From: Iphione sp. A-MEVVRFRX5
Lineage: Eukaryota
NCBI GenBank assembly: GCA_976226885.1
Contig: OZ320313.1
Coordinates: forward strand, 45,880,001 to 45,944,000
Reading direction: 5' to 3'
Length of the DNA: 64,000 nt
How positions within the stretch are numbered: the first letter of the stretch is position 1; each line of letters begins with the position of its first letter. The position numbers and the translations under genes are program-made. Below, piece after piece: positions 3,801-64,000 of this stretch. Under the pieces are notes generated by a model. It was not told the origin of the DNA and searched no databases. It worked only from the letters and a program-made list of their open reading frames with translations.

Positions 3801-5466
3801 TTCATACAGACATATATGTAAACTTGAACAATAAATGCGAAGACAGATACGGACAATTCTTGCAGTTATCATTTTCATGTCTCACAGTAAAATAAGATAG
3901 CAGTCGATTCCCTCTATTGAAAATGACGTGGAGTTTCTAGTTCAACATGAACATGCTATTTTGCGAAAACAAGTATAATTTCTCCCAACGATTCTTTGTA
4001 TACAGTTCATGTGGCATTTTCTTAAGCATAATGAAAGGAAACCATTTACACAGCTATCAGCAACCCGGTGCATTCTTCAGTAGGATGACACCCTGTATTA
4101 GTGTTATAAGATAATCTTCCATTGCCCAGAGTAGGTAATTTTGTCAAATGATCGGAATTTCGAAATGACTACAATACACTTATACTGTATACGCCACACT
4201 GCCTTCAGTTGGTAGACGGAGCTGTTGTACTTGAATTATCGTCAACTTAGCCCTCTCATACTAAATGGAGCGTCTTTTTCTGTATGTTCAGTTCTCCAGG
4301 ACCAGGCATTCCAGGCATCACACCCAGTTCTGTTGTTTTAATGAATAATCTGCTGCTTGGTCGGTAAATATGGACGTTGTGTTCGTTGCTCAAGAGACAA
4401 CCCTACTTCAAGGTCGCCCACCAGTGGTGACACCTAAAGAGTAAACCTTCAAGACCAGACCTTGCTGTCAGATCAACTCTCAAAAATGCTAAATCACGTG
4501 CCTTCTATGTTTTCCCTCAATGAGACAACGATTATGCTCAGTCCGTTGGGATTTTTCATCCTCACTCCGTGCCAATTCAAGCAAATATATGTACATGGAT
4601 AGGACCTGATCTGTATTTATGTAAGTTCTATAAGTGTCTATGGAGGAACCACCTGAAGGATATCATTGGACTTTGATAGGGTATTAATTTTTAGTAGACT
4701 ATGGAGGTTATTTATCCTTTGAAATTTACTGGAATAACATTGTCATTTTCTCATTTCTTAATATGAACCACACTTTCATCAGATTGTATATGTAGATCTG
4801 CGGTAACCCTCACTGCGAAAAACTATTTACTTATTAGGCCAAAATGTCCGAATGAGTGAAATAAAAGAAAACAAAGGATAAACAGTGAAATTGGTGTGAT
4901 GTTTATAGATTCATTCATTTTAATTCTAAACAGTGATTTCCTGCAAGTGACATCTATCACCCACTGAATGAAAAGGATACCGGCGTCTTTTAATAGCATG
5001 CACATGTTGCACAGTTAGTATACAGTTATATATACATGCGTGGACATAGGTCTATAAATATATGATAATCACAGTACAGCCACTGATGCAATGTCTGTAT
5101 TAACTCAATAGGATACTGATATACCGGCCAGCCAGCAAACGTTGGAGATCTCATCATCCTGATTTTCTGGTCCCCTTTTGTATAGATAGTCGGATACACT
5201 GCCGGGCAAACTTACCACACACCCTCATTAATTAGACTTTTTTTCTCTTGCTTTGAGACCTCGTGACATACACGCACAAATTAATTTTAGCACAAAACTT
5301 TCAAATAAATATATGTTATTAACGGATGTAAATGCACGTATTCTGAAGATGTGTTTTTTTCTCGTTCGGATTAAAAACCAATTCTTGTCGTCGGTGAATG
5401 TGCCCTTGCAGTGGCATCACATCTGAGGACCGTTAAATAAACCCATCCGAGCCGACACGCGTATAG

Positions 5467-7347: not shown

Positions 7348-8697
7348 CCAACCTTGACTTGAGTTTTTTTTCAGTTTACATACGGTTACTTAAGGATATA
7401 CATGTATATATATAAACATGTAATATGCAATGGGTACTTTTATATGTTTGTACATTCATTCTGTGGCTATGCCATGCAAACACGAATTTTTCAACTTTAC
7501 AGGCATTCAGTCAAGTATTGTGCATGATACTGTGTGAGCATTAACTATAAATATTAGCAGAAAGTGGAATTAATGTTCATATAATATTATACTAAAGACG
7601 TTTTTATATGCTTCCAATTAATTTCTTATGATTTAACAGATTTTGGAAATTTTATGCGTCTCTTATGTCGCACACAAAATGTATTCTCTAAAGGGTTTCA
7701 GATTCCAATCAGTAAGTCATTGTTTTGTCAGTGGTGCAGATACAACGTGGTATTAGGTTGTACGGTAATGTGTGAAATCCAAAGGAAAATGGTCAAACTA
7801 TTTACGGGTAAGTAGTATCCATTTGCAGGCATAGAAAAACAGAATACTCTGACAGTATACCAAACAAATGTGTCGAGCCTGGTCAGTGTGATACAAAATT
7901 ATTGAACTTATTCGTTCTTTGTCTCACTTACCACGTCCAAACAACATTTTGCCTCAGATTTCAGTCCATTTCGCTTGATTTTAACTTTTTTTGTTATCTA
8001 CGCGGAGAGACCAAGACTGAGATTCTCATTTCACAAGTGCAATTCCTGAGGTACCCATGGGGCCCTCATGTGTCCTTCCATACGTCTATTTTGTGGCCCA
8101 CACTAGCCAATACAGAATCAGGTCTACAGGACTGTCCACTGTGCATAAATGTACCTCCAATACGTTCCAAAACTTGTTTTAACGCCACATACTTAAAATG
8201 CTGCAAACAAAGCTTTTCCACGAATTAGTCATGCCTCACTAGGTTATTAACATAACTAGTGACTCATTTGCTTTGTGTCAATCCTGACATTATTTATTTA
8301 ACTCATGTATTGATTGTATAGACTGTTTCTATTGTTTATTGACAATTTAACTCTGAAATCATAGCCATTTATGTGTTTATTAAAGTAAACATATTAATGA
8401 CTCTATCTGTATACTCTGTTGAATTTCTACACCTCCGCATATCAATTCTCAATCCGTGTCACCACACGGTCCCTTAGAACTAAACTGATGAAGCAAAACT
8501 ACACTTATTCTTATTTCTATTTTCACTTATGTCAAACTCACACTCAATCTATTTTAATAAATTATTTTTTTCTACTACAATGAACCCTATGACACCATAT
8601 TGTTTACTTTGTTTACTTTTTTTCTAAAATCTGTTACTCACTTATATTTCTTTGTTATATTTGTACTGTCCATATCCGTACCAACTGCCAATAATTA

Positions 8698-11600
8698 TTG
8701 TGTGGCATTTTGTTTTGCAAAATATGTCAATTATCTTCTAAAGAATGCAATTTGTATTGTTTGTGCAATATGGTAGCTGCCAATATACCTAAACAGAAAG
8801 GCTTAATTGTAGGTCAGCAGAATGTCTGTAGCCTCTTTGCAAAGAAGAGCCATGTTGAATTATTACTTGTTAATAACAATATTGACATTCTATCACTTCA
8901 AGAAACTTGGCTGTCATCTAGGATTTCTGACGGATTGTTAAATATACCAGGTGATGATTTCCTTAGACTTGATAGGAACAAATCTATGGTAACCACTGCA
9001 AATGTCAAGGACAGAGGGGGAGGTTTAGTCTTATACTATCGCTCTTCTTTTTCTTCCACCTTCAGTTATCGCAATCTGAATCTAATGAACCCTGATATTG
9101 AACTATTATGTGTTGAACTGACTCCTGGTAAAATGAAAATGATGCTTTTGCTATGTATTTATCGTCCGCCATCTGGTTCCATTTTGAACTTCCTTGCAAT
9201 GTTGGAATCTACATTGATTCAACTGAACTCTAGATGACAAATATTCCTTTTAGGTGATATTAATCTAAATTTTTAGAAAAATCAAATACTTACGTAAGAA
9301 GGTTTGTGGATTTGACAGTTCATACAAAATCAAACACTCGAGTGACTAAGAAAACTGCTATGCTGATTGACATTATTGCCTCTAACTGTAATCATATTGT
9401 AAGCTCTGGTGTCTGTGTCACTGCCCTGTCAGATCACTACTTAACATTTGTATGCAAAAAATTCAGTAGGAATAATATAAGTACTAAAAAGAAAGAATAC
9501 TACTACAGGAAAGTCAATGACGAAAATTTGGAAAAATGCATTGACCATCTAAAAAGTTCAAACTGGTATGAATTCTATCAAACCGAGGATATTGCTCAAG
9601 CTTGGTCCATCCTACACTCGCTTGCTCTTAATTCTCTGAACATTACTTGTCCTCTCACTAAAAAGAAGTTGCAGTTTCTAATCGTAATCACTGGATCAAT
9701 GCCACTATTTTGAAAGATATCTGCTTAAAAAATTATTTTCTTAAAAAAGCCAAAGAAAGAAAAGACGTTGATACTTCTAGAATAGCGAAATTTTTAACAT
9801 ATCAATTCGGAAAGAAGATACAATTTTATAAAAGGAAATTTTCCAGTGAATCTCTGTCTGAATACAATGTTAGTAGTCGACAGTATTGGAAAATTATAAA
9901 GGGAATCTTAGGAAATGATACAGAAGGCAACAACACAATTAACACCATTTCTGATGGCAAGAATGTTGACTCAACTCTTGTTGCTGATATATTTAACAGT
10001 TATTTTGTTAATGTGATCAGTACTCTGACCAAGAACATGGCTGATCCTGTATTAACCCCGTGTATAGCACCTAATGTCCCTGAGTTTAAGATACAAAATA
10101 TTACAACGGATGTAGTGCAAAGTGTGCTTGTGATGTTAAAAAATAGTAAATCATCTAATATTGATGGCATTTCCACCATTTTATTCAAGAGAATCTTTGG
10201 CAGATGTCAACATCAGTTGGTACATCTACTGAACTTGTCTATTACTAGTCATAAACTGCCATTATCCTGGAAATGTGCTAAGGTTATTCCCCTACATAAA
10301 TATGGAAACTCAAAACTGGTGGACAATTATAGGCCTATTTCACTCCTACCACTACCAGTAAAAATATTAGAGAAGGCTATTTTCGATCAGCTTTATAACT
10401 TTTTAGAAAATGAAAAACTTCTGTGTGATGAGCAATTTGGTTTTTGCAAACACAGGGGTACTAAAGAAGTGATATTTTCTGTTCTTTGTAACCTATATCA
10501 GTCCATGAATGAATAAAAGCATAGTATAATAATATTTGTTGATTTAAAAAAAGCGTTTGACAGTGTGTCCCATGATATTCTCCTTCATAAGCTTGAACAT
10601 CAATTTAGATTCTCAAAAAGTAGCATTTTATGGTTTGCTAACTACTTATCAGGAAGACAGCAATTCTGCTATGTAAACAAAATCAGCTCTGACAAATTGA
10701 ATATTGTAACTGGCGTACCCCAGGATCGACCTTAGGGCCCTTATTGTTTTCTATGTCCATTAATGACTTACCAACCGTACTAAATGAACAAGTGACCCTT
10801 TTTGCTGATGATGCTCTTATTTCAATTTCGGACACTGACACAAAACGATTACAAAAATGGGTACAAAATGCCTGTGATAAGCTATTTACATGGTGCAAAT
10901 TGAACAGGCTAATCTTAAATGTTAAAAAAACCAAAATTATGCCTATACTGTACAACAAAGAAACATTTGAAAACATGGCTTTTCATATAGATGGGCAAAA
11001 TGTTGACTTAGTAGACACATATAAATATCTAGGAATCTATTTTGACTCAAAACTGAAATTTAAGACTGAACTGGAATCTGTCCATACAAAAGTAACAAGG
11101 AAACTTTTCGTTCTGAACAAGGTTAAGTGGATGCTTCGTGAACAAGATGTTTTAACTCTCTTTAAAAGGTACATAATACCACACATTGATTACTCAACTG
11201 TGTTTCTCTCTTGTAATACAGCTAATGATCTCAAGAGAATTCAATGACTTCAAAATAGAGCACTTGCTATAGTTGACACATCGGAAGCTAAGAAAAATAC
11301 TATTTTATCAGCTACAGACTTGCATTTGAAATATGGCATTATGAGCACCTTCAGAAGAAGAGACTATTATGGTCTAACTATTGTACATAATATGGTCCTT
11401 CAAAATCTTATTAAAATTAAAGATCCGACAGTGGCAACCAGAAGCTCTGATGGTAGAATTATTGCTGTACCTACACCACGAACAACACAAGTAAAAAAAT
11501 CAATCCTGTATGAGATGATAGGCAAGTGGAACAACTTAGAAGCAGTGTAAAGAGATAATGATAACATCCATGAATTCAGACATTGTGCCAAATTTTTATC

Positions 11601-11783
11601 ATTATCAAATCACAATTATTGACTATTTACTTTAACTAAAGCTATTGGTACTTGTATATCGATGGAAGATTGTAAAATCACAATATGATGTACTGTATCT
11701 ATATTCCACAGTGTGAAAGCTGCCCTTGTAGGGGCAATACCTTGGAATAAAAATATTATTTATCTTATCTTATCTTTATCTTA
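8698..11783 (+). mobile_element. Decayed L2/CR1-clade LINE (ORF2: APE endonuclease plus reverse transcriptase), with several stops and frameshifts
   Basis: APE motifs QQNVCSL, DILSLQETWL, CIYRPPSG, LLGDIN, SDHYL. RT motifs WKCAKVIPLHK, NYRPISLLP, VDLKKAFDSVSH, GVPQ(G)STLGPLL (1-bp deletion near 10722), LFADD. The 3' end has stem-loop tgccc-ttgtag-gggca (about 11721-11736), AATAAA at 11746 and a (TATCT)n tail. The 5' boundary is not resolved. Confidence 0.93.
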
Positions 11784-12039
11784 TACATGGTTTCTCTACT
11801 AAGATCCGAATGGAAAACAGTAGAAAAACAGTCCAGAGATCAAGTAATCTAGAGATGTGTTTTGCTTCAAATAAACTATCCTCCGAGGAATAGTGCTAGG
11901 AATATGTTGCTGGGGAGTCGATCGGTCTGGGAATAAACTCAGAAAAGAAATGTCTTGCGATCAGTGCGTCCAGAAATGAACATCTTCAAACTAGAGGGCA
12001 ACAGAAGGTCAAGAGGTTATTTTGAAAGGGTATACAAAC

Positions 12040-12830
12040 TCGGCTACATTGTTGTAAACTCCTGGAACATAAAACACATGAACTAAAATTTACGATCCTC
12101 CAAGAAATTCCAAATTTTGGAAGCAATTGATCTACATAGCAAAGATTTAGCACCTACTATATGGTTCACATACGAAATAGCAGTCATATTGTCATAAAAC
12201 ACAAGAATAACAGTATTTGATACCGATTTGAAAAAAGAAAAACTCAATAAAGCAATGCAAATTGATTTAATTTCAAGAACATTAATACCTTCTTCTTCTG
12301 GGCACCAGCGGCCACTAGCAGAAACTCTTTAAAGGCGAGCCCCCCATCCCGACTCTGAAGCATCAGTGTACAGATGATATATTGGCTTCAAGGGACACAT
12401 ATGACAGGTTTGTGACCCACCAACTGAACTCCTGAAGCTTGGCAGGAGTAATAACCATTTTACCATGTGCACATGTGCACATGTTCAGAAAAATCATATC
12501 ATTCAAAACATCACATAGCAAAAATATTTCCTTCAGCCATGATGTACAAGACTTTCATACGGTCCAACAAATCTTGATTTTGATCATGGAAACCACAAAG
12601 AATGGGATTGTGCAATAACCGGAATTTGAGAGGACCCGATGGTTTTCTCACCAATATTGAACATGATAAGAAAGTCTTTTCTATCATGTCAGGCTGCCAG
12701 TGTATCACCAATTCAATGCATCCAGTACCGAACAGGAGATTTTTTAATAAAATCACTCTGCAGGTTGAACCATTCAACTCTGCAATGTACATCTACTCTC
12801 TGATTAAAGATGGCATCATATATATTCTTT
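12040..12830 (-). mobile_element. DIRS1-like tyrosine-recombinase retrotransposon remnant (RT fragment plus RNase H)
   Basis: Manual minus-strand translation across stops and frameshifts gives YTDASESGWGA, INVLE, DNMTAISYVNH..GAKS and IWNF...YVPGVYNNVA, the DIRS1-type RNase H signature. A weak RT N-terminus (ILVRKPSG) lies upstream. Confidence 0.82.
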
Positions 12831-12881
12831 AATCTCCTTTAGCTTACAAAAACTTCTTGTATGAGAAAATAATGTCATGTA

Positions 12882-15439
12882 CACTGAAAACAAACTGGGA
12901 GTCAGGGTGACTCTAAAGGGGAGTCCAGCACTTGTCTCCAGATTCACTCTTTTGAGGAGTCAAGTTTGACTCTCTTCCATAACAGAGTCAATATGACTCC
13001 ACTCAGACTAGATTCATATATTTGACTCTTTTCAGTATAGAGTCATGTGATCATTGACTCCTCTTATAAAGGAGTAAATGAAGCCTGAGTGGAGTCAATA
13101 TAGACTGTATGGAAGAGATGCAAAACTTGTTCCATGTGAATCTGGAATGACAAGTGCTGGACTCCCCTGAATATGGTTAGAACTTCCAGTTATCTGAAAA
13201 TCTTGACCACAGTGAATATATAAATATATAAGTGAGTAGTATATTAATACTACTCACTTATATATTTCATCTGTCACTAAATAAAATTATATAATGTGTA
13301 TCACTGTCATTTATCACACCTAAATCCATAGATCTACATATACACCTACATGAAATCCTTTATGCATACCCATTCAAATCCTTTAAACATCACACATCTC
13401 CATGCACACTTTCATACACATGCTGACACCTATTCATGCTTAAAATACATATCTTCACTTATGCCCACACACCTACACACAAATACTTACAAGGACATGC
13501 ATTTCACACATACACATGTATATATATGTACACATACTTACAGATAGGCACACCTACACCGTTCATCATCTCTTATTTATACACATCTATATTACACATC
13601 TACACACATATATACTCCTATAATACACATTTACAAACCTGCATGCACATACCTAAAAACACACATATCACACATCTACAAACATTTATTGCCACATCTT
13701 AATAAATGCTTACACCTATACATAGCAATACACAGATCTACATGAAGACAACTCAACACATACATTACACACCTACTAGTGTATACACATCAACAGACAA
13801 ATCAATATATATGTTACATATACTTACATATAGGCCCACCTACAAAAAATCATCTCATATTTATAAACATCTCTACACACTTACACACATTTACATGCAC
13901 ACTGTGTTACACACATATCAAACACATGCACACATAAACCTATATATCCTTATGCCAGCAGACATGTACACATGTCTACACATACCTACATTTATATAAA
14001 TTTCTTACATACACATGTATGAACTCCAATTTGCATAACATTATACACATAAATATAACACATTTATACACATATACACACCTACATACACATAACATAA
14101 TATATATACATGTACCTATACCTGAATACACATTTACACATTTACATGCACATAACTATAAACACACATCACACATCTACAACCATGTATTGACACATCC
14201 TAATAAGTGCTTACACCTACACATAGCAATACACAGATCTACATGTGCACAACTCAACACATACATTACACACCTAATAGTATATAGACATCGACAGAAA
14301 AATCAATATATATCTTATATATACTTACATATAGGCCCACCTACACAAAATTATGTCATATTCATACACATCTATACACACCTACACACATTTACATGCA
14401 CACTGTGTTACACACATATCAAACACATGTGTGTAAACCTATATATCCTCATGCCAGCAGACATGTACACATGTCTACACACACCTACATTTATAAATAT
14501 TTATTTACATATGCACTGTACATAAATGGTCTCCAATATACACAACTTTATACACATGATATTACACATCTACACAGATTTATATACCTACATACACATA
14601 TATATACCTTTACCTGCATATACATTTACACATCTACATACACACAACTTTACACACATATCACATACCTACAAATAAGTATTGATAAATCCTAAGTGCA
14701 TACACCTATACATATCTATACACCTACATGTGCACAACATAACACATACATTACACATCTACTAACATATACACACCTACAGAAATATCCACACATGTTT
14801 ACACACACCTACATGTAGGCCCCAAATACATTCACAATTATATATGTATACACACCTATACATAGCTACATGCACACATTACACACATAAATCTACTACC
14901 AGGCTTATACACATATAAATACATACACACATATATACCTATATACAATCCATGTACACACAGAATTTCTCTCTCCATTTTCTTAGTTGACCAATTATCT
15001 GTATGCTTAGTCTCCTTGTCCCTAACCTTTTTCTCCTCTCCCCAAACAAAGAAACATGATGTAAACACATGTACTTACAGACTGGTCATGCTTTCAAATC
15101 AAGTCTTCCAGTAATCCATGGCTTGAAGTTAGGTAGTATAGTTAATGTGCACCACTTCTACACTGAGTTGTATTCAAAATATTAGGATCCTCCAGCTACT
15201 TATAACCAATAGACAGAAAAAAAGAGATCCCATCTTCATGATGGTAGGGGTATGTTTCAAATCTAACTGCCAGAAGTCATGTGACCTCACTTTTTCCCTC
15301 CTGACAGGAGAGTTCCTCTAACATTTGACTCCTTTGGAGAGTCAAGTGAGCCCTAAGAGAGTCAAGCTAACAGAGTCAATGATTTTGACTCTTACACCCT
15401 AAACTTGACTCCAGTTTGACTCCTGTTTTGTTTTCAGTG
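12882..15439. mobile_element. Non-autonomous CACTA/EnSpm-superfamily (CACTG-type) DNA transposon, 2558 bp
   Basis: TIR CACTGAAAACAAA at 12882 and TTTGTTTTCAGTG ending at 15439, TA on both flanks (12880-81 and 15440-41). Dense subterminal GAGTCA/TGACTC repeats in both orientations at both ends. No transposase. Confidence 0.85.
13330..14965. repeat. CA/TA-rich low-complexity satellite with a higher-order unit of about 500 bp
   Basis: (ACAT/ACAC)-rich tract. The block cacatctaca...aagtgcttacaccta...acagatctacatg recurs near 13672 and 14172, and more degenerately near 14665. The His/Thr/Tyr-rich ORFs called here are artefacts of the repeat. Confidence 0.9.
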
Positions 15440-17057: not shown

Positions 17058-18320
17058 CAGGCCACTCTCTTGATTATGGACACCCGCCGGACTTTTTCAA
17101 ATCGTTCGGATTCGAGACACGTTGACATTAGACATTGTGAGTATTATCTGGGGGGTCAAACTTAAAAAATTGTTTTCCCCTTCTCCCTCTCTCTCTCTAC
17201 AAAGTATATAGGACAACACAGGAGTTAGGTTTCAGTTTATTCAGTAACAAATAGCAATATGGGAATAAATAATGAAAAATATTTAAGTTCATCAGGATAA
17301 CAAACTGTACATACATACACACAAAATTTAACTCATTTCTTAAAAAAGCTATCCAAAGTGGTCTGGACCAGTTTCCTGGTGAGAGTTCTGTTAGAATGGC
17401 ATTGTTGAAGTGGTTACAGAAGGTTAAGGCACTCAATGTCACCTTCATGGAGGAAGTGTTTCCTCATCTTCTCGAACATCTCCTGGATGTCAGAGTCTGT
17501 GGTTTCAAATGGTTCCTCCTGTGGTTCATCCTCTGGTTCCTCCTTGTCCTCCTGAGTCTCCTCAGCTGCCCATCCTCATCATTGGCACTGTAAGCTGAGA
17601 GGTCATCCTCTAGGCCCTGATACTCTTCTGCTGTCATTCTGCTCTCTTCAGGCATGTTCTGCTGGACTCTTGAGAGGAGGGTCATGAGTGGCTCACCGTC
17701 TGGGTCTGGAGGAGAGGCCACACACTCCAGGTCTTCAGGAATGGGTCTCACTCCAGACCTGATGAAACATGCCTCCACGGTTGTGGCCTTCACAGCCTTC
17801 ACTGCAGAAGTCACCCAAGAGACCTTCCTGGGGTTATCCTCCTGATCCAGCTTGGAGACAATGTACTCCAGCAGTGACTTCTTATAGCGGACCTTCACTG
17901 CCAGGATGATGCCCTGGTCCAAGGGCTTAAGTGCTGAGGTTGCATCTGGTGAAAGGAACACCACCTTAATGTTACTCAGCTGGAGTCCTCCAGGGTGTGA
18001 TGGGGCATTGTCCATTAAGGGACAGACATGTCTCCCTTGGGATTTCATCTGCCTGTTGAAGGAATGTAACCATTCTTTAAACAAAGCTGTTAGCATCCAG
18101 GCTCTTTTGTTGGTGCACCACATGAACAGGAGAGATGACAATATCCCTCACATTTCTCCAGCATCTTGAGCACATCAATTTCCCAATCACCAATGTCTTT
18201 TAGAATTCCCCGAAGCAACTGATGCAGAACATGGCAGTGATCCACTCCTTTTATTTCTTTGATGTGCTTAGTGCTAAGTGCTTCAACCTTTCCATTTCAC
18301 TTATCATCTATACAGAACCC
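17058..18320 (-). mobile_element. Decayed pogo/Tigger (Tc1-mariner) transposase
   Basis: ORF 17464-18141 has NKRAWM, LMDNAPSH, VVFLSPDATSALKPLDQGII (DDE_1-like). The upstream broken frame reads WITAMFC...KTLVIGK. A possible TIR CAGGCCACTCTCTTGATTATGGACAC is at 17058; its partner was not found. Confidence 0.88.
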
Positions 18321-35263: not shown

Positions 35264-35824
35264 GGCCCGGTTCCTATATGTGCCTTTGTATGCATTTGTA
35301 TGTGTTTCCTTTCATGTGCATTTCCCGCCCAGGAGCTCCTGTATGTTCACACAGACCTGGTTTCCATACCTGCGGGAAACCCAATGGAAAACTAGATGAG
35401 AAACCAGCAAAATTGATAGGGAAAAGTATAAAATTCGATCAATTTGACAATATAAGTGCTAAAAACCAGTGAAATTGATGAATAAAGGAGGACAAATCAT
35501 GAAATTGATGAAGAGAGCTCTAAAAGCCAGTGAAATTTATGCAAAAAAGTATGGAAATTAACGAATCTGACAAGAAAAGTGGTTAATACTGGGAAAAATT
35601 GATGCGAAAATGAAAAAGAAAGTGGCAAATGTGATGGGGACTTGAGGACATGAACAGAATCATGTTTTTACTTACAACATAGCCTTTGAGGGGAGAAAGC
35701 GCTTGCATTCCCTTGTATTTGTGTGTTTGTAATTTGTACATGAAATTATTAAACATGTTCAATAATGAATAACATGAAGCACCCCAATGCACACATGCAC
35801 AAACACAGGTAAGGAAACTAGGCC
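35264..35824. mobile_element. Non-autonomous Harbinger/PIF (Tourist-like) MITE, 561 bp, TAA TSD
   Basis: TAA|GGCCCGGTTCCTATATGTGC ... GTAAGGAAACTAGGCC|TAA. The left end is similar to the Harbinger end at 57490 (GGCCCGGTTTCCTTATGTGC...TTGTATGC). Confidence 0.82.
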
Positions 35825-37345
35825 TAAATGAGCACAATTTACATCTCAAGCCTTAAGGCATAGACATGCATTCCCTGCTACTAAAACATTACTACAACTT
35901 AATGTGTTCTAGTCAATATTATGTCCGACCAAGAACCAATAGTAAAGAAAGCAATCTTAGCCGCAACCAATATATGTTGTCCCCGATGCCTATGATAAAG
36001 ATAGCAATTTAGAGACATTCCCAATTTAAGATGCCACAGGGAGTCATAACGGGCTATTTACTCCTCCAAATTATGATCAGTGATGTACTGATAACAGCTG
36101 AGGGGACTGGCGGTTGTATTTTTATGGGATCTACGTCAGTGTGTGAATGAATTAAATACCCAGGCACTCTCTGTAATAAAAGCTTTTTTGTCCATAAACG
36201 AAAGCTACTTACAATTCTTATTAATCTTACTATTATAATTATTGGCTTTACTTTCAGCAAAGCAGATTAATGCAGACATTTAGAAAAGTTGAAAAGGTGT
36301 CATGATTACTAGTATTAATGAAACATTGTAATTATTGGAGAAACTATAACTTAATCTGGAAACCGTAGAAAGGGTGATAAAATTCGAGTAACATCCGGAC
36401 GGCTTGGTGACTATAAAACCCTTCTGTTAGTAACTCGCACAATTCAGCTGTTTAAGTCTGTTGTAGTTCATCTAGAGCTGCGACTGTTTCTGTTAATTGG
36501 CGCTGCCCAAGTGACAAAAAAACAAATTACAAGCATCAGTTAACAAGGTAATTTAAGTGTCTCTTTTGGCTTGTGCAGATTATGATAAATACAAAACTGC
36601 TGACCTTTGGAGGATGGTATGGACCATATTTCTAAATGGCGAGGCCTAGCTTAAGCAATGAAAGGACAAATAAAAAAAATAAAGATTTGTAGAAATACAT
36701 ACAGCCTACTGACACTGTGTTCCCTTTTGTAGCAGGACTAATACAAAAAAACAGGTGACAAAATATCTCTTGCGTTGAAAGAAATGATATTGTGTCAAAA
36801 GAAAACTTAAACCTGTATAAATGGTAAAAAGGATATGTGAAAGGAAGGTCTGAAGCTGATGATTTGTGTTCTCGTTCCTCTTCGGGTCCCTTATATACTG
36901 GTTTTACGCACATGAATCCATTCCACACCACAGGAATAAATAACACATGATTCGGCAACCAGTGCTTGTAAATGGATAATTTCAATCCACAAATTTTAGG
37001 AGAACAGTTGAGTCATTTGCATATATTAACAAATCACCATCGGACTGTATTTTTTCTATCGAATACATCTACTTAATTATATTGGCTTGAAGCATGAAAA
37101 ATTACATTATATTCATAAAATGAGGTACTTAGGTGTGGAAGCTCTTATTTCCAAATATTCCCTGAAGTGCTTTCCCCATGGAGACGAATTATCCACATGC
37201 AAATTGTGGCATGATGCATGCTGCCCAGACCTGCCCACAACAGGTGGCGGGGTCTATCCCCATGTATGAGAACTATACACACTCCCTTTCTTGAATTTCA
37301 AAGAATGTAAAACATATGTCAGTTCTTAAAATTTGCATAAAAAAT

Positions 37346-50559: not shown

Positions 50560-52720
50560 GTGATGGCGGTGGGGTTGGATCCTCCTGGCAGGGATAAAGG
50601 CTCTACAGAGCCATACTATTAAACACTCTGGGTGAGTTAGGGTAGACTGGGTTACAATACAACAGCAGGGGATTAATCCGTTCTCTGATGCTGTAAGGAT
50701 AATGTAAGGGTCGATAATACTACTTACTGATTGCCAGGCAACGTGTCTGGTGACAGGTACTGCATAAGGAGCTTGTGAGACAGTCTGTCTCTCTCCTTGA
50801 GTGGTATAAGCAGATTGTTCCACATCTGTAGCCCCCTGTACATAAGGGAGTTGGTGAACGGTCGAGGCAGGTCAGCTTGAGGTCCCACAGCCCCTCATCT
50901 CTTTCTGCATGTAGTCGTTGTCAGTAGCCCAAGCCTGGTCGGTTAATGGACTGCTGAGACTCAACGACACAAGACAAGATCACCAACCTGGCGGATCTTC
51001 ACTGACTTCATCAGCATGGTCACAAGTTGGTCGGGGTTGGTCTGGAGACTCCTGCGGGCACATTTGTTTAGATGTACCTGCAAGCGGATGATGTCATCTC
51101 TTGGCAGCCTGAACCAGGTCACAGCTTGATAGTGGAAGTGTGACATTATGAGGCTCTTGAATACAAGTACTCTACAGCCCGAGGGAAGCACTTGCTTTAG
51201 CCTTCCAAGGCAGAGTGCGATACCCCACGTTTGACCAGTTAGTTGTTTGATGGATGCTTTCATCCTCAGGGTAGCATCCAGACAGTAGCCTAGTATGCAG
51301 TTTGGGTCAGCCATGGCTAAGCTGCTGTCATTTAGCCTCAGGTCTAACGGAATTCTGGCAGCTTTGCCCATTGGGCAATAAGAGCACTTTCCTACACTTA
51401 GTAGGAGCCGTTCATCCTGGCACCATTTGGGGACAGTGTTTGGAGTGTGCAATGGAGCCCCTCTTAGTCGAAGATCTTGTGCTTCAGCGAGGACAGTCAA
51501 GTCATCCACATATATAACGGCATGACAACTGTCAGGAAAGGATCTGGGAATCAAGTTGATTACGAGGTTGAAGGTGAGTGGGCCAACGATGGACCCTTGA
51601 GGAACACCTTGCAACAGCCGCTGTGGTCCAGAGTCTTGGTCTGCACACTTTACAAACTGGCTCCTACCCTCCAGGTAGGTCACCAGTCTTCATGTTTTGG
51701 GGCCTGCCACCATGGTGGTTAGTCTTCTTACAATTGTAGTGGAGACATGCTTGTCATCTGCTGGTCCCTTACCACGTGATGTGAGTATGAGCTAAGAATA
51801 GACATCAAGCTTGATTATTATTGTGTAATCTAATGTCCAGGTGTTGTGAAAGGGTGATCGTGTAGCCACTCCTGTGACCACTCCGGTAACTTTACAGGAG
51901 CCATTACAGGAGCAACCAATCAGAAGGTTGCAGAGGTTATTTTTCACAACAGTCTAGACAGAATATCTAAATGAGGTCTATTTTTAGTACAGAAGCCGGA
52001 CATATGTCTAGAGTATTACTATTCTGAGACATTATTGCATAATCACCGTATCATTTAATGTTTCTACAGGAGTATATAAGACTGTACTTTTCTGTAATAA
52101 ACAGATTTGTACTCTCACTGCACTGTGAGAAAGCACCATTCCAGCAGGCTAGATTTCTGCATTTGGAGTGAACCATATTTCATGATTGTTGTTATCATTT
52201 CTCGTTGCCTTTCTTGTTGGAGACCAAGCTCACGTTACACGTTATTGGAATGTGGGACCAGATCAAAGGCTTTCTTCAAATCCAAAGCGATCATAGGGAA
52301 TAGGGCTGATTCTTTCCACCTTCTAAGAGTCTGGGAATCACCCTGTCTCCAGTATCCTGGAGTAAATCCAAGATAGGAAATCCAGACAGCAAAGAAACAG
52401 GGCTTGAGGATGCATGAGGGCACACCCTCCAGACCAGAGGATTTCCGTACACTCATCTGGCTGACTAAACACCTGATCTCCAGTGGTGTTGGTGCCGTCA
52501 GTTCAAAATGGCATCCATGGAGGTTTATATAAGTGACAACATTCTCTGCAAGAGGTTGTACAGGGGCACGTACTTCTCTGGTTGTGCTCCTTGTTTCAGG
52601 CAGTAGGATCAGGGAGCACCGGCTCGGTGTTGGCCTTCCCCAGTGCAGCATTACGGACCTGCCATGTTTTGGAAGTAGTACTGGAAGCCTCAACGATGAG
52701 GTCATTCAATATGCATTAAA
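50560..52720 (-). mobile_element. Decayed CR1/L2-type LINE reverse transcriptase, internally deleted and interrupted
   Basis: ORF 52235-52705 has KSSGLEGVP...LK, WKESALFP and ALDLKKAFDLVPH. ORF 50961-51683 has YLEGRSQFV, GVPQGSIVGPLTF, IYVDD and ILGYCLD. The NYRPIS segment is missing. Confidence 0.88.
51777..52237 (+). mobile_element. Probable solo LTR (about 460 bp) inserted in the LINE RT
   Basis: Ends TGATGTGAG ... CTCACGTTA (7 of 9 inverted match), CACG on both flanks (51773-76 and 52238-41), TATATAAG near 52073 and AATAAA near 52096. Confidence 0.55.
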
Positions 52721-57486: not shown

Positions 57487-57830
57487 TAAGGCCCGGTTTC
57501 CTTATGTGCATTGGTATGCGTTTGTATGCGTGTGCGTTTCAGTGCGGGAAATGCATCGACGGGGTGCTAATTGGTTTTCGCACCTTTTCTCCGCACACCG
57601 CCGCAGACCGCCGCAAAGGGGTGTTCCTTATTTGCGGTGACATCCGTGCGTTTGAGTGCGTTAGCACTTAGGGAAGCTTGGGGAAGCCCCGGGGACTCCC
57701 ACGGAAGTGACGCGCTGCCTAGTAACGGATGTTTATAAGCCCGCCAAATTTCAGCGCCAACCACCACTTCGACAGAAGAATTCACCCTGTTCGGACGTTT
57801 TCTTTGCCGACTATCCGAATATCCGTCACG

Positions 57831-60714
57831 ATGTTGACTCCACAGGAGTTGGTGCTTACGACGGTGATCTTCCAGGCTTTCGAACAAGCGTACGCATTGT
57901 TTTACAGCCCAACTGTAACGAAAGCAGTGGAAGAAGCGGCTACCGAGAAGAGAAAACACAAGTTCTGGCAAGACCCCATCATCGAGAAGCGGAACATCTT
58001 GGGGGCTTTCCACACCTTGATTCAAGATTTTCTTCACCACAATGAGGCCTTTAGAGGCTACTTTCGCCTGACCATTCCCCAGTTCAACGATCTCGTCCAC
58101 CGACTGACACCGTACCTGAAGAAGAATCCGCGGAATGGACGCATCATTTGCCCTAAGGAGCGAGTAGCCATATTTCTACGGTATGTATTCATTTCCATTG
58201 TGATTAATTTTTTTTTTTGTGTCTTTTTCTCCGTTTATCAGTACCTCCGAACATCCGTTTTACCGATTAACCGTTTAACCGTTTATCCGTTTGCCTTGTA
58301 TACTGTGTTGAGAATAGCCATATTTCTCAGGTCTCTTTCTTTTTTTTTTTTTAAATTTTTTTTTTTTTTTTTTGGATTTTCCGTTTGTCCGAACATCAGT
58401 ATGTCCGAACATCCGTTTTACCGATTAACCGTTTCTCCGCTTTCCTTGTAAAACAGTGTTGTTTAATTCCAAAATGTAATTTTGTGTGTTTGCCAAATAT
58501 CTACCGAACATCCGTTCAACCGATTATCTGTAACATGTTTGAGATATTCCAAATGTAAATGTGGGCCTTTTGTGCAAAAAATACCGAACGCCCGTTTTCC
58601 TTGTTTAACCGTTAATAATGGCATTGATGCACCTTTGTAAGCATTGTTGCTATTGTGTACACTGGTATGCCCTGTTTATTGTGCAGTTTGACAAAGAAGC
58701 ATTCACGAATTAAATTTTTATTGATCAGACTGGCAGGCTAAGATACAAGTAAACAATATGAGTCCAAATTAAAAAGAGACAATTAGACCCCCTCACCTCT
58801 ATTCGTACCACAGAAATATTACTACAGAATTTGTAGGTAAACACTGCTATCAAAAAAATTGTTTGTTCAGCTGGTATGATTACATTCAATAGTAGTGTTT
58901 GTCGTATACATTATTCACAATGTTGTTGGCCTGACCGAGCAGCTCGGTGAACCCCCCCGCTGCTGTGACGCCCTGACTATGCCCATATTCAGAGGGTTCA
59001 TCATTTATTAGTCGCTTCTGCACTCTGTTGTTTGGAGTGGCATGCTGGGTGGTTGTGGGTGTTGCTGGATACTGGGAAACACGCGTGGTAGGTGTGCTTG
59101 TTGATGGCCTGTTGTTATGGTATCTCAATTCGAACAGTTCATTCCTCACTCTGTGCAGGAACATGTCCCTCTCGAGCGGATGTAGATCTTGTGCATCTTC
59201 CACGATTTGTACCCAGGGGCGCCACTTTGGACTGCGCCACTCCTTCACCAGTTCGGCGCACTCCGATTGTAAGGCCGAGGAAGTGGCCCCTTCGTCCCTG
59301 TTCGTCACCTTCTCCAGGCACTTCACAGCCATCGCCATATGGTCGTTGAAGACGCCCGCCTTTTCATTGAGGTTCTTCACCTCAACGACACCAGCAGAGA
59401 CCTTTTTAGTGACCCTTTGTTTTTTCGCACCTACAGGTTGTCGCGGAGTGTCTTTAGCTTTGCACTTTGTTGGTGGTAGCGGAGTATCGGTCTCTATCTT
59501 GACAACCTCCTCGTCTTGTGTGGTGACATCATCAAAGCCCTCCTGTGAAGTTCTGTAATGAAAGAAAATGTGGCAATAAGTGTGTGTAATGTCTTTGTCA
59601 CAGGTTTGCAGCGACTGGAGAGTCTCAAAAGAGCCTCTCACTGCAGTACCGGCTTGGCCGTGCTACAGTTCACAAGATCATCCGCGAGGTGGCAACCGCC
59701 ATTACAAAGGAATTGCGTGATGACTACTTGAAAATGCCTTCCACTGCCGAGGAATGGAGGAATGTTGCAGCCAACTTCGGCGAGAGCTGGGACTACCCAA
59801 CATGCCTAGGTGCAGTGGATGGCAAACACATCAAGATGTTTTGCCCCAAGCTGTCTGGATCGCTATTCTACAACTACAAGTGTGAGTGTCATATTAATTT
59901 ACATCTCAATTATCCGTTTTACCGATTATAAATTTTCCGACTCTCCGTTCATTCGATTATCCGTTTGCCAGAATTTATTTATATGTACATGGATTTTTGC
60001 CTGTTCCATTATTACACAATAACCTCTAACATTGCATCTCTCTTGATTCCAGCTACATACTCGGTCGTCCTAATGGCTGTGGTGAACGCGAACTATCAGT
60101 TCATGTACATCAATGTCGGCAGTTATGGAAAGAACAGTGACGCTGGAATTTTCGGCCGGTGCTCATTCGGTAAGGCACTGAATGCTGGCGCCCTGAATCT
60201 ACCACCACCAACTGTTCTACCGGGTGCTGATCATCTGGGACCCCTGCCCTTCACCTTCGTAGGCGACGAGGCCTTCCCCCTATCTCCAAACCTGATGCGA
60301 CCCTTCCCTGGAAAATCCAACGCCCGACACAAGACCATCTTCAACAAGAGGCTGTCCAGGGCCCGACGTATGGTCGAGTCATCGTTTGGCATCCTGGCAG
60401 TGAGATGGCGGATGTTCCACACCAGCATCTGCCTCGACCCTCATACGCTTACCAAGGTTGTACATGCGTGTTGTATTCTCCACAACATGATTCAGGCCCA
60501 TACCACCCCAGCCAAGATCAAGTTGGTACGCGACACAGCTAGACAGGAGACCAACATTTTTAGGGACACCAGACCCACTGCCCATCGAATGCGAAGAGCT
60601 GGAATTGCAGTGAGAGACGCGTACGCCAAATACTTCACCCATGTGGCACCCCTGCCTTGGCACTTGAGCAATGCTCGAGAGCTGGGGTACGAGGAGTCAG
60701 ATGAAGAGGACTAA
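57831..60714 (+). CDS. Harbinger (HARBI1-like, DDE_Tnp_4) transposase, join(57831..58180,59604..59881,60053..60714), 429 aa, open
   Basis: 350+278+662 = 1290 nt. Junctions CG|gtatgt...cacag|G (ERVAIFLR-FAATGESQKSLSLQYRLGRATVHKII) and T|gtgagt...ttccag|CT (YNYK-STYSVVLMAVV). Motifs CLGAVDGKHI, GDEAFPL, RARRMVESSFGIL, ACCILHN. Confidence 0.93.
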
Positions 60715-61022
60715 GTATACTAACCCTGGTATTGGTTCCAGAATGCTGTCATCATCCACCTGACTGGACGCCTCGAGTTCCTGGGTTGGCTGGGAGGCCT
60801 CTTGTGATTCCTCCTCCTCATCAAAGGAGAAGTTCGATTCACACTCCCTCTCCTGCACGAGCGGTTCCAGGAATTTCATGTTATCATAGAATTTCCATTT
60901 CTTGAATTTTGCCGTCGCCTGGCCACTTTTTGTGATCCCATCCTTTCTTTTCTTCATGTACTCATCACGAAGAGAGCGCCAGCGGGTCTTCACAACTGCA
61001 CAGTCGAGGTCGTTCTTGTTTT
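58886..61022 (-). CDS. MADF/Myb-SANT-like Harbinger accessory protein, complement(join(58886..59552,60725..61022)); 5' exon(s) not located
   Basis: Exon 61022-60725 encodes VKTRWRSLRDEY...TKSGQ...KKWKFYDNMKFL, the C-terminal half of a MADF domain. Donor GG|gttagt at 60724 and acceptor ttttctttcattacag|A at 59553 join in phase (EPIPG-TSQEGF). Stop TGA at 58886-88. Confidence 0.88.
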
Positions 61023-61258
61023 CTGTAGTGTATAAATGTGTACAGTGTTCAATATGTCAATATTTCCAGACAATAACATTTACTCATTTGCCGCATTGCA
61101 TTACAGGACACATAGCGCATTACAGGACACATAGGATTCAGATATTACTCAGCAATGTACATGTATTCATTTCTTGTTTTTTTTTTAACCCAAGTTTATC
61201 CGCATGTCCGAACATCCGTTTATCCGCACGTCCGAGCATCCCTTTCACCGTTTATTCA

Positions 61259-61470
61259 GCTTCAGCTTATTAATCGTTTTCCCTCTGCATTTCAGGCCAT
61301 AGTGTTAAGAATTTTCGTAGTTGGTAAGATTAGTCTGTTCATGCCATTACTTAGTCGTTCTGCTTCAGCTTATTAATCGTTTTCCCTCTGCATTTCAGGC
61401 CATAGTGTTAAGAATTTTCGTAGTTGGTAAGATAAGTCTGTACTTATTATAATACATTCCATTACTTAGT
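61259..61470. repeat. Tandem duplication with a period of about 103 bp in the MADF upstream intron
   Basis: gcttcagcttattaatcgttttccctctgcatttcaggccatagtgttaagaattttcgtagttggtaagat at 61259 and 61362. Confidence 0.9.
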
Positions 61471-61758
61471 TTCAGCTTCACTTTATTTTTATCTTATTCT
61501 TGTCTTTATGAACCAGCCGTCAGTGTTAAGAATGTACATCTATTGCTAGTGGTATCTCAAAAAATTCGACATCTGGAATAATAATGAAAGGTGAAATTGA
61601 ATATATGACCATGGTAGGTTTATTGCAGTACTTTTTTCTTGTTTTTCCTATAAAAAAAAAAAAAAAGACATATTTAGTATGTGGGAAAGAACAGTCTCAA
61701 CGGAAAAAAAGACAATGTTCATGTTCCTGAGCCGGCGTTCAGAGTTAGGCCCGGTTTC

Positions 61759-63625
61759 CTACTCCTGTTTCCCTCTACCTGAGGGACTAGTGGGGGCATC
61801 GCTCACCCCACGGCTGGTGGCTCCTCCGGGCGCTGCCCGGCCAGATGCTGCCCGGCCAGATGCTCCCCTTCCTGGTGCCGCCCTTCCTGGTGCCGCCCTT
61901 CCTGGTGCCGCCCTTCCAGGTGCCGCCCTGCCAGGTGCTGCCCTGCCAGCTGATGAAGGTGCTTCCAGGCTCGCACCTCCGGGGGACGCTGCACTTCCGC
62001 TCGCCGCTGGGTCATCATTACCTCGACCCCTAGCCCCCCCCCGGGCTCACCCACCTCTCACCGAAAGAGCAGCCACCTGGTTGGTGAGGATCGCCATGTT
62101 CTCCCGGAAGTAACCAATGGACTCCCAGACCGAACGCACCGTGGTGTCGATGAAGGTGGCGCTCGCACTGCACTTGGCTTCCAAAGACGACACCCTCTCG
62201 ACGGCCAGGCGGTCCAGGGACTCCATTTGTCGGGTGACAAGTTCGGTCTGGTCTTGCTGGCGGGCAGAAAACGCGTCCAGCCATCGGGACATGTCGTCGA
62301 GTCGGCCCATCACAGTCTGCTCCAAGGCACTCAACCGCTCCTCCATTCTCCGCTCGAAATCGTCTATTCTCCTCTCAACGCGCCGCCGCTCTGCCGCCTC
62401 TGTCGCTAGGCCCGCCCGGGCGGCTGAGGCAGTAGACGAACCCTCCAGGGCGATCTGCAGCCCCTCCCTCAGCTGCAGGTGGCCTGAGGACAGGGTGAGG
62501 AGCTGACCAGCACACAGCTCCAACAGTGGACCTGTCACAATGGAATACAAAGTAGTATAAAAATTTGGGGTTTTGCTTCACATGTAGTACATATGCAGTA
62601 ATTGACATGATTATTGGCAGGACATACCAGATAAGAATATTCGGTCTGCAGAAAACCAGTTCTGTATTTTGATGTGAGCGGACAAACTCTCATTCTGTAC
62701 ATATATCGAAAAGTGCGATTAATTTAGAACTGCTCAACTTGCTAAAACTACCGAACCACCGAACCACCGATTCACCGAACCACCGAACACCCGTGCAGTC
62801 GATCGACGGAAAATAAGATATATAACATTGATATGCTCTTACCAGCTTTCCCCTCATCCATTGCAGCACCGAGTTCGGCAGCACCGCCCTGCACCTCGTC
62901 CTCCAGGTCCTGGTCCGTGGGCTGCACGACTATGGGGGCTTTGTCCTTCACAAGTGTTGCCGGCTGCGTTGGCTGCTCCTCAGGTGAAAGTCGTGGCTGC
63001 CTTGTCTGCTGCTCCTCCGGTGAAGCCGGCGGCTGCCCTGTCCGCTGCTCCTCCGGTGAAGCCGGCGGCAGCCCTGTCTGCTGCTCCTCCGGTGAAGCTG
63101 GCGGCTGCCCTGTCTGCTTCTCAGGTGACGCGGGGGGCTGCCCTGTCCGCTGCTCCTCCGGTGAAGCTGGGGGTTGCCCTGTCTGCTGCCCCTCCGGTGA
63201 AGCCAGCGGCTGCCCTGTCTGCTGCTTCACCGGTGAAGCCGGCGGCTGCCCTGTCTGCTGCTCCTCCGGTGAAGCTGGCGGCTGTGGTGGGGCTTCCTCC
63301 TCCTTCTCCTCCTCCTTCAACTCCAGCACGGGCAGCAACGGCAGCTGCTGGATGACCGGTGGTGCTGGAGGATGTTCAGCTGGCTGGTCTGCCGCATCCT
63401 CCTCCTCCTCCTCCTCCATGCGCTCCTCGTCAGACGAAAGGGGCTTTGCCCCTCTATGACGGCCACCAGCAGCTATTGGCTCTTCCTCTGACGAGGACGG
63501 GGAGCGTACTGTGACGCTGTGCGCGCGCGGCCCCATCACAACGCTGCGGTAGTAGGTCATGCGGCGTTGAAACTCAATTGGATCCAACGATCGCCGCTGC
63601 GGCTCATGCACCTCCTTTCCCTCAT
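61759..63625 (-). CDS. Unidentified spliced gene: acidic/Pro-rich repeats, coiled coil, RGG/GRAAP tail; exons 63625-62843 and 62531-onward; 5' end outside the window
   Basis: Acceptor tttcag| at 63626, donor G|gtaaga at 62842 and acceptor gtgacag| at 62532 are all phase 1 and in frame. Heptad-rich segment RRVERRIDDFERRMEERLSALEQ...LEAK. In-frame TGA at 62047-49, after which the same frame stays open to TAG at 61759. Confidence 0.7.
61830..61950 (-). repeat. 15-bp coding-type repeat (GRAAP/GRAAS), about 8 units
   Basis: ggtgccgcccttcct-type units on the + strand. Confidence 0.9.
62965..63295 (-). repeat. 36-bp coding repeat (TGQPPASPEEQQ), about 9 units
   Basis: Visible in DNA and in ORF 62772-63686. 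One unit is 33 bp, so the frame is preserved. Confidence 0.93.
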
Positions 63626-63691
63626 CTGAAATTTGATATGGACAAGTAGTGAGCGGTTGTTCAGTGATTCGGCTAAGTGCAAGCAATATTG

Positions 63692-64000
63692 AGCATGGTT
63701 ATTGGCATGACATACCAGATTCTATCTTTTTGTACGAGAAAAAAACTACATGTCACACAGTTATCACCGAGCATTGATTCCAGTGAGCTGTTATGAGCGG
63801 ATGTTCAGATAATTAGCATAGTAGGTTATGAGCGGACGTTCAGAGAATTACCCTGGATGTCAAAAATGATGCATGAACAATGTTTCCTGTTAATTTCAGC
63901 ATGGTTATTGGCATGACATACCAGATTCTATCTTTTTGTACGAGAAAAAAACTACATGTCACACAGTTATCACCGAGCATTGATTCCAGTGAGCTGTTAT
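63692..64000. repeat. 206-bp-period direct repeat running off the window end
   Basis: agcatggttattggcatgacataccagattctatc...gagctgttat at 63692-63794 is repeated at 63898-64000. A related shorter copy is at 62604-62632. Confidence 0.9.

Follow-up and report, generated by a model that had tools for sequence, protein, structure and literature searches.

The 64,000-nucleotide stretch analysed here (Iphione sp. A-MEVVRFRX5, assembly GCA_976226885.1, contig OZ320313.1, positions 45,880,001 to 45,944,000; hereafter the window) probably covers the left and central portions of a PIF/Harbinger DNA transposon of autonomous type, whose two convergent genes are mutually interleaved in an inherited layout; we put the probability of this reading at about 0.75. 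The textbook case of a DNA transposon that depends on two proteins is that of the Harbinger/PIF elements, with a DDE transposase and a Myb/SANT-like DNA-binding protein, here of MADF type; the literature consulted treats their genes as neighbours. In the window, the transposase, encoded on the plus strand, would be spliced over the last exon of its partner, which lies in transposase intron 1, while the MADF-type partner, encoded on the minus strand, would be spliced over transposase exons 2 and 3, which lie in the last intron of the partner. The layout would be a trait inherited within a clade of Harbinger elements that have MADF(-BESS) partners in marine invertebrates.

According to the gene models (Table 1), the last exon of the partner is located entirely within transposase intron 1, transposase exons 2 and 3 are located entirely within the partner's intron, and the number of shared coding bases is zero; the sole overlap of the two introns is the spacer at 59553-59603. 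The first-pass annotation of this DNA had claimed that the transposase intron holds the whole last coding exon of a MADF gene, that the MADF intron encloses the two remaining transposase exons, and that no coding bases overlap, all of which is borne out by the gene models and exon coordinates. Its three canonical GT-AG, phase-consistent junctions hold at the sequence level, the split codons having been checked, and its remark that neither gene can be cleanly deleted without harming the other follows from the coordinates. The predicted pre-mRNAs necessarily overlap in antisense over at least 58700-61022. Moreover, as the donor of the MADF exon sits 10 bp from the transposase stop codon and neither AATAAA nor ATTAAA was found within 1.1 kb after that stop, the 3' untranslated region (UTR) of the transposase should be antisense to the MADF exon.

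The predicted spliced transposase consists of three exons with a 1290-nt open reading frame (ORF) encoding 429 amino acids (aa); the predicted junctions are ACG/GTATGT...CACAG/G and AGT/GTGAGT...TCCAG/C. Exon 3 matches the Pfam family DDE_Tnp_4 (PF13359) with E = 9.6e-24, and the catalytic triad is kept, its residues D (AVDGKH), D (NSDAG) and E (VESSFG) being aligned with those of the homologues. An alignment with seven homologues (nemertean, snails, fish and tunicate) has zero gaps at either junction. The position of intron 1 is identical in the Lineus, Gigantopelta and Danio homologues, and counterparts of exon 1 were found in eight of the related loci described below (L001-L003, L005, L006, L008-L010). 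Translation could alternatively begin at an in-frame ATG at 57729. Over exon 3, the closest relatives of the transposase are 45-59% identical to it; these relatives stem from marine invertebrates and fish. No intron separates exons 2 and 3 in any of the nine related genomic loci, and the lineage-specific intron 2 is suggested to have been gained through insertion of a CCG repeat.

The MADF exon of the partner (61022-60725) matches positions 40-84 of the Pfam profile PF10545 with E = 8.5e-07. At the predicted junction AGG/GTTAGT...TTTCTTTCATTACAG/A (60725 to 59552) a codon is split 2+1, and the frame is open from there to the stop at 58886-58888. The gene does not start at 61022; this position is a phase-1 acceptor (3' splice site), with a counterpart in the related element L002. 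Thus, of the MADF gene proposed in the first-pass annotation, the exon pair and the junction between them stand, while the start at 61022 and the completeness of the gene do not, 61022 being an acceptor and the N-terminal exon being absent from the window. About 40 residues encoded immediately before the donor of this exon (60843-60725, minus strand) form an acidic extension. Relatives are without it, their exon ending right after FLEPFV..(K/R); a same-phase GT directly after QERE is a candidate alternative donor and could skip the extension.

The intron-borne exon (58886-59552) encodes a product that is acidic at its start, has KKQRVTKK as a basic patch, and combines a helical core with a tail rich in S, T and P. 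Its G+C content is 0.51, the other exons having 0.49-0.54 and the intron flanks on both sides 0.34-0.35, with sharp borders. When intron 1 was simulated 5000 times under a Markov-1 model, 10 of the simulated sequences contained an open frame of 222 codons or more (a chance of about 0.002), and the codon bias of an overlapping gene cannot account for the frame, because the opposite strand is intronic there. In position, strand and size the exon matches the BESS exons of the relatives, and the phase of the codon split by the preceding intron is common to the window, L002, L003 and L008.

Table 1. Coordinates of the features of the Harbinger element in the window (TIR, terminal inverted repeat; MITE, miniature inverted-repeat transposable element).
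Feature	Position	Strand	Basis
TAA target-site triplet followed by left TIR core GGCCCGGTTTCCT	57487-57502	+	alignment with MITE ends and right end of L001
Transposase exon 1, N-terminal region, ends in codon split 2+1	57831-58180	+	gene model and homologue alignment
Transposase intron 1, 1423 bp, holds the partner's last exon	58181-59603	+	GT-AG
Largest block of 8-bp periodic CCGnnnnn repeats	58227-58536	+	triple-period matches
Other CCGnnnnn blocks	57807-57830, 59902-59969, 61196-61261, 62748-62804	+	triple-period matches
AATAAA polyadenylation signal, 163 nt 3' of the partner's stop codon	58717-58722	-	sequence
Last coding exon of the MADF partner (predicted), 222 codons and stop	58886-59552	-	in frame with 61022-60725
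51-bp spacer, intronic for both genes, two 3' splice sites back to back	59553-59603		coordinates
Intron of the MADF partner, 1172 bp, encloses transposase exons 2 and 3	59553-60724	-	GT-AG, phase 2+1
Transposase exon 2, helix-turn-helix region and first catalytic D (AVDGKH)	59604-59881	+	gene model and alignment
Transposase intron 2, 171 bp, lineage-specific, centred on 8-bp periodic CCG repeats	59882-60052	+	repeats at 59902-59969
Transposase exon 3, DDE_Tnp_4 core, stop TAA at 60712-60714	60053-60714	+	PF13359
MADF exon, C-terminal half of the MADF domain and acidic extension	60725-61022	-	PF10545 match
TTA and exact second copy of the 13-nt TIR core, direct orientation	61745-61760	+	possible left end of nested insert

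The first-pass annotation had also raised the question of conservation in related genomes, and the interleaved exon order does recur in Harbinger elements of several invertebrates. Ten related loci were obtained, nine of them genomic; the remaining one, L007, is a transcript-sized contig holding the transposase only. The loci were scanned with small profiles for the N-terminal and C-terminal halves of MADF (MADF_N and MADF_C), for BESS, and for the three transposase exons (Tp1 to Tp3), and the order was read along the plus strand, all partner parts being on the minus strand. The order Tp1, BESS exon, Tp2+3, MADF_C, MADF_N was found in L002 and L008 (both from ENA assemblies), L005 (Gigantopelta aegis) and L010 (Ruditapes philippinarum), with a long interspersed nuclear element (LINE) nested in MADF intron 1 of L008. 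L001 and L009 (ENA assemblies) have the order of L002 so far as it is preserved, and L004 (Holothuria leucospilota) holds the BESS exon only, directly upstream of the main transposase exon. The order is Tp1, BESS exon, MADF_C, Tp2+3, MADF_N in L003 (Lineus longissimus) and Tp1, Tp2+3, BESS exon, MADF_C, MADF_N in L006 (Danio rerio).

L002 is a complete 5.3-kb element with TIRs of about 70 bp, and its three-exon partner gene has intron positions and phases equal to those in the window. The presence of BESS in the equivalent exon was confirmed with Pfam in L005, L006 and L008, and was judged by eye only in L009. Back-to-back acceptors occur in L002, L003, L005 and L009, with a spacing of roughly 45-145 bp as read off the printed sequence. 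As the interleaving recurs in related elements, it appears to be an inherited trait of the element group and not an accident of this copy. Judged by the exon orders read from these loci, the wider family has at least three layout configurations, and, since the genes of the zebrafish relative converge without being interleaved, interleaving is one variant among several.

Two of these loci have peculiarities of their own. In L005, the Gigantopelta BESS exon (4829-5438) contains a frameshift that leaves two overlapping frames, the second of which encodes BESS; the partner gene of this copy is therefore broken, while its layout is intact. In L008, an ORF of a non-LTR (long terminal repeat) retrotransposon with RVT_1 and Exo_endo_phos domains (10621-12990) stretches MADF intron 1 to about 5.8 kb.

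The element belongs to the PIF/Harbinger superfamily by its transposase, its left TIR and its TAA target site. The left end lies at 57490, with TAA directly before it; the right flank of the copy, where the second copy of the target-site duplication is expected, falls beyond the window. A Tourist-like MITE of 563 bp (35264-35826) with the TIR GGCCCGGTT(T)CCT and TAA on both sides belongs to the same family as the Harbinger element, which is evidence of past mobility of the family in this genome; the MITE also contains subterminal TGTGC/TATGC repeats. These observations bear on the question of whether the locus could instead descend from a Harbinger element but now be an immobile gene pair domesticated by the host. 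Insects provide documented cases in which PIF transposase and MADF genes were domesticated together (PMC9710019), and the long branch of the transposase would be in line with it. We nevertheless consider domestication extremely improbable in view of the left TIR with its TAA, the family MITE with its TAA duplication, and the surrounding DNA, which is made up of transposon fragments.

Several observations weigh against the reading of the locus as part of an autonomous-type element with an inherited interleaved layout. First, the right TIR (AGGAAACCGGGCC followed by TAA) was not found in the 64-kb window, inverted copies having been searched at up to two mismatches. Second, an exon for MADF positions 1-39 was not found in the 64 kb, either by a whole-window profile scan of both strands or by three-frame reading of 61000-64000. 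The partner gene is thus incomplete in the window, as the N-terminal half of MADF is encoded nowhere in it, and, because the first exon of the partner is not within the window, the autonomy of this copy is unproven. Third, neither a word search nor an exhaustive search of 1.84 billion representatives yielded a homologue of the exon 58886-59552; Pfam gave no match of any kind to it, BESS included, up to E = 10, and a profile of the BESS motifs of four relatives gave none either. An hhalign comparison of this exon with the exons of six relatives gave a marginal match (E = 0.016, probability 2.9%), and the single-sequence AlphaFold2 model of its product is of low confidence (pLDDT, the predicted local distance difference test score, 44.6). 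Fourth, every splice junction of both genes is predicted from sequence. Finally, the transposase of the window forms the longest terminal branch of a 14-row transposase tree, and decay of this copy is therefore possible. The tree is unrooted and its base unresolved, Lineus being grouped with tunicate and fish sequences (support 93/91); it therefore assigns neither an order to the rearrangements nor an ancestral layout.

The results on the intron-borne exon could mean that the frame, whether arisen by chance, decayed or a gene of its own, is not part of the MADF gene here, and that the MADF product ends at the read-through stop at 60697. In favour of this are the lack of a detectable homologue or domain, the low confidence of the structure model, and the 10 of 5000 simulated sequences that attain its length. 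On the other side, the frame begins at a strong acceptor in the right phase, has exon-like G+C with sharp borders, and is followed by a polyadenylation signal 163 nt past its stop; its position, strand and size, as well as the split-codon phase, are those of the BESS exons described above. The hhalign match, weak as it is, is co-linear in domain order, comprising the acidic start, the basic patch, the helix and the segment equivalent to BESS. As a weak lead, the language-model clusters nearest to the product are BESS proteins (0.86). The MADF partners that accompany PIF elements are also reported as fast-evolving, to the point of escaping BLAST (PMC9710019). Taken with these points, a frame outside the MADF gene seems to us quite unlikely. 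The AlphaFold2 model places helices at residues 58-146 and 201-220, with disorder elsewhere. A BESS motif placed by eye at LHPLERDMFLHRVRNELFELRY was unsupported; hhalign aligns SALQSECAELVKEW...WVQI instead, and that marginally. When the BESS exon of L002 was used to search for annotated full-length partners, it retrieved itself and fragments only. The C-terminal exon of the partner is easily overlooked, because it evolves beyond recognition and is hidden inside a transposase intron.

The missing first exon raises another alternative, namely that the architecture is real but the copy is defective, its partner gene having been cut off from, or left without, its first exon by a nested insert starting at 61748, so that no functional MADF protein is made. 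In relatives, the MADF_N exon is located about 0.3-0.8 kb upstream of MADF_C, whereas none is found here in 64 kb. An exact copy of the TIR core stands after TTA at 61745-61760, the minus-strand frames of a putative third gene (61762-63698) stop exactly at this copy, and the sequence beyond the 13-nt core is unrelated to the subterminal repeats of the Harbinger family. Together with the LINE that occupies the corresponding intron of L008, these findings suggest, as a lead, a nested TIR-bearing insert that begins at 61748 in the 5' intron of the MADF gene, carries the third-gene frames and has its right end beyond the window. The frames that are present are all intact, however, and a long intron need not abolish splicing; a defective copy is possible, if rather doubtful. 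Under the preferred reading, the first exon of the partner probably lies past the nested insert. The region upstream of the MADF exon also contains a tandemly duplicated 103-bp unit (61255-61487; the copies are 98% identical and are accompanied by a third, partial copy).

As to the origin of the layout, it would most simply be a frozen rearrangement. Since the main exon of the transposase lies inside an intron of the partner, a simple deletion or inversion cannot separate the two genes without destroying one of them, and this would explain why the layout persists. Work by Sinzelle (2008) and Hancock (2010), as cited in PMC9710019, describes the partner protein of Harbinger/PIF elements as binding the element ends, interacting with the transposase and aiding its nuclear import. 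By analogy, the partner protein encoded here would bind the ends of the element and bring the transposase to these ends and into the nucleus.

It could be argued instead that the interleaving is kept by selection for regulation, convergent transcription over at least 2.3 kb leading to interference or double-stranded RNA (dsRNA) and thereby to silencing by small RNAs or to a balance between the two proteins. Pre-mRNA overlap is indeed unavoidable from the coordinates, the 3' UTR of the transposase is forced antisense into the MADF exon, and the layout persists across phyla. However, the 10-bp abutment of the transposase stop codon and the MADF donor is not conserved, the gap being about 270-770 bp in L002, L005, L008 and L010, the zebrafish relative has no interleaving at all, and the difficulty of undoing the rearrangement explains the persistence equally well; we regard selected regulation as unlikely. 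A related proposal treats the layout as a selected design, in which the catalytic exon is kept in an intron of the partner (intron 2 in molluscs and in this genome, intron 1 in Lineus), thus preventing derivatives with a single gene deleted and linking both genes by way of antisense transcription and of splice sites set back to back; repeated relocation of this exon between partner introns would then lie behind the three configurations. We think this improbable. Selection for coupling or self-regulation is possible but is not required by the data, and the zebrafish relative does without interleaving. A frozen rearrangement thus remains the simplest account of the layout.

Repeats of the form CCGnnnnn (CCGTTTAA, CCGAACAT and similar) gave 16 triple-period matches, all on the plus strand and all within 57807-62775, with none elsewhere in the 64 kb. 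Both genes hold such repeats in their introns, and others lie immediately before the transposase ATG. The core of the repeat resembles the subterminal GCGTTT repeats, the intronic form being CCGTTT and the subterminal form TGCGTTTG, and on this resemblance the repeats are candidate protein-binding sites. Elsewhere, the window carries pieces of reverse transcriptase/endonuclease frames of LINE type together with a pogo/Tigger-like DDE frame (8698-11247, 17464-18141, 50961-52705); no host gene was seen in this remainder, only transposon fragments.

The interleaved antisense layout physically ties together the fates of the Harbinger transposase and partner genes, and it imposes a long sense-antisense overlap of pre-mRNAs as well as two 3' splice sites standing back to back within about 50 bp. 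It provides a natural system for asking how opposing splicing and transcription coexist, whether transposons regulate themselves by antisense overlap, and what might lead annotation pipelines to overlook such partner genes or join them wrongly. The compared loci include that of a bivalve (Ruditapes), the distinct configuration of Lineus and the non-interleaved state of zebrafish.

Among known systems, the PIF elements of insects and the pairs co-domesticated from them likewise combine a PIF/Harbinger transposase with a fast-evolving MADF protein (PMC9710019). The insect transposase and MADF genes are adjacent, sometimes dicistronic, and their direction is not always shared, while interleaving was not reported (Markova et al., 2022, PMC9710019). 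No description of the interleaved layout was found in the full-text literature searched, Repbase, Dfam and key older papers being outside the scope of that search. Relative to this literature, the interleaving of a PIF/Harbinger gene pair would be new, and the existence of MADF partners of PIF elements was known already (PMC9710019).

In Danio rerio (L006, LOC100191015), a DDE_Tnp_4 transposase with an intron at the equal position is likewise accompanied by a convergent three-part partner (MADF_N, MADF_C and BESS exon) on the other strand. Unlike in the window, the two genes stand tail to tail without interleaving, and the transposase intron is 406 bp long with no partner exon inside. We take this locus to be similar to the Harbinger3_DR-like systems of Sinzelle et al. 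2008.

In Lineus longissimus (L003), NCBI lists a 416-aa transposase (LOC135492680; 8001-10196, plus strand) and a 266-aa MADF gene (8381-10430, minus strand) with overlapping ranges, and a three-exon model of the latter reproduces the 266 aa. The NCBI gene models thus display an interleaved arrangement in public annotation; we know of no publication discussing this overlapping gene pair. The Lineus genes resemble those of the window in lying on opposite strands, in their mutual interleaving, in the back-to-back 3' splice sites and in the equal positions of the MADF introns. They differ in that MADF_C and the BESS exon are both located in the transposase intron, and in that the main exon of the transposase lies in MADF intron 1 and not in intron 2.

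The remaining interleaved loci (the mollusc elements L005 and L010, and L001, L002, L008 and L009) share with the window both the exon order and the strands, and the codon phase matches in L002 and L008, where it was checked. They differ from it in having a BESS motif in the intron-borne exon, recognised by Pfam or by the local profile (in L009 by eye only), and a transposase without intron 2; L002 differs further in its TIRs of about 70 bp with other subterminal repeats. The TIR of L001 (GGCCCGTTTCC) is similar to that of the window.

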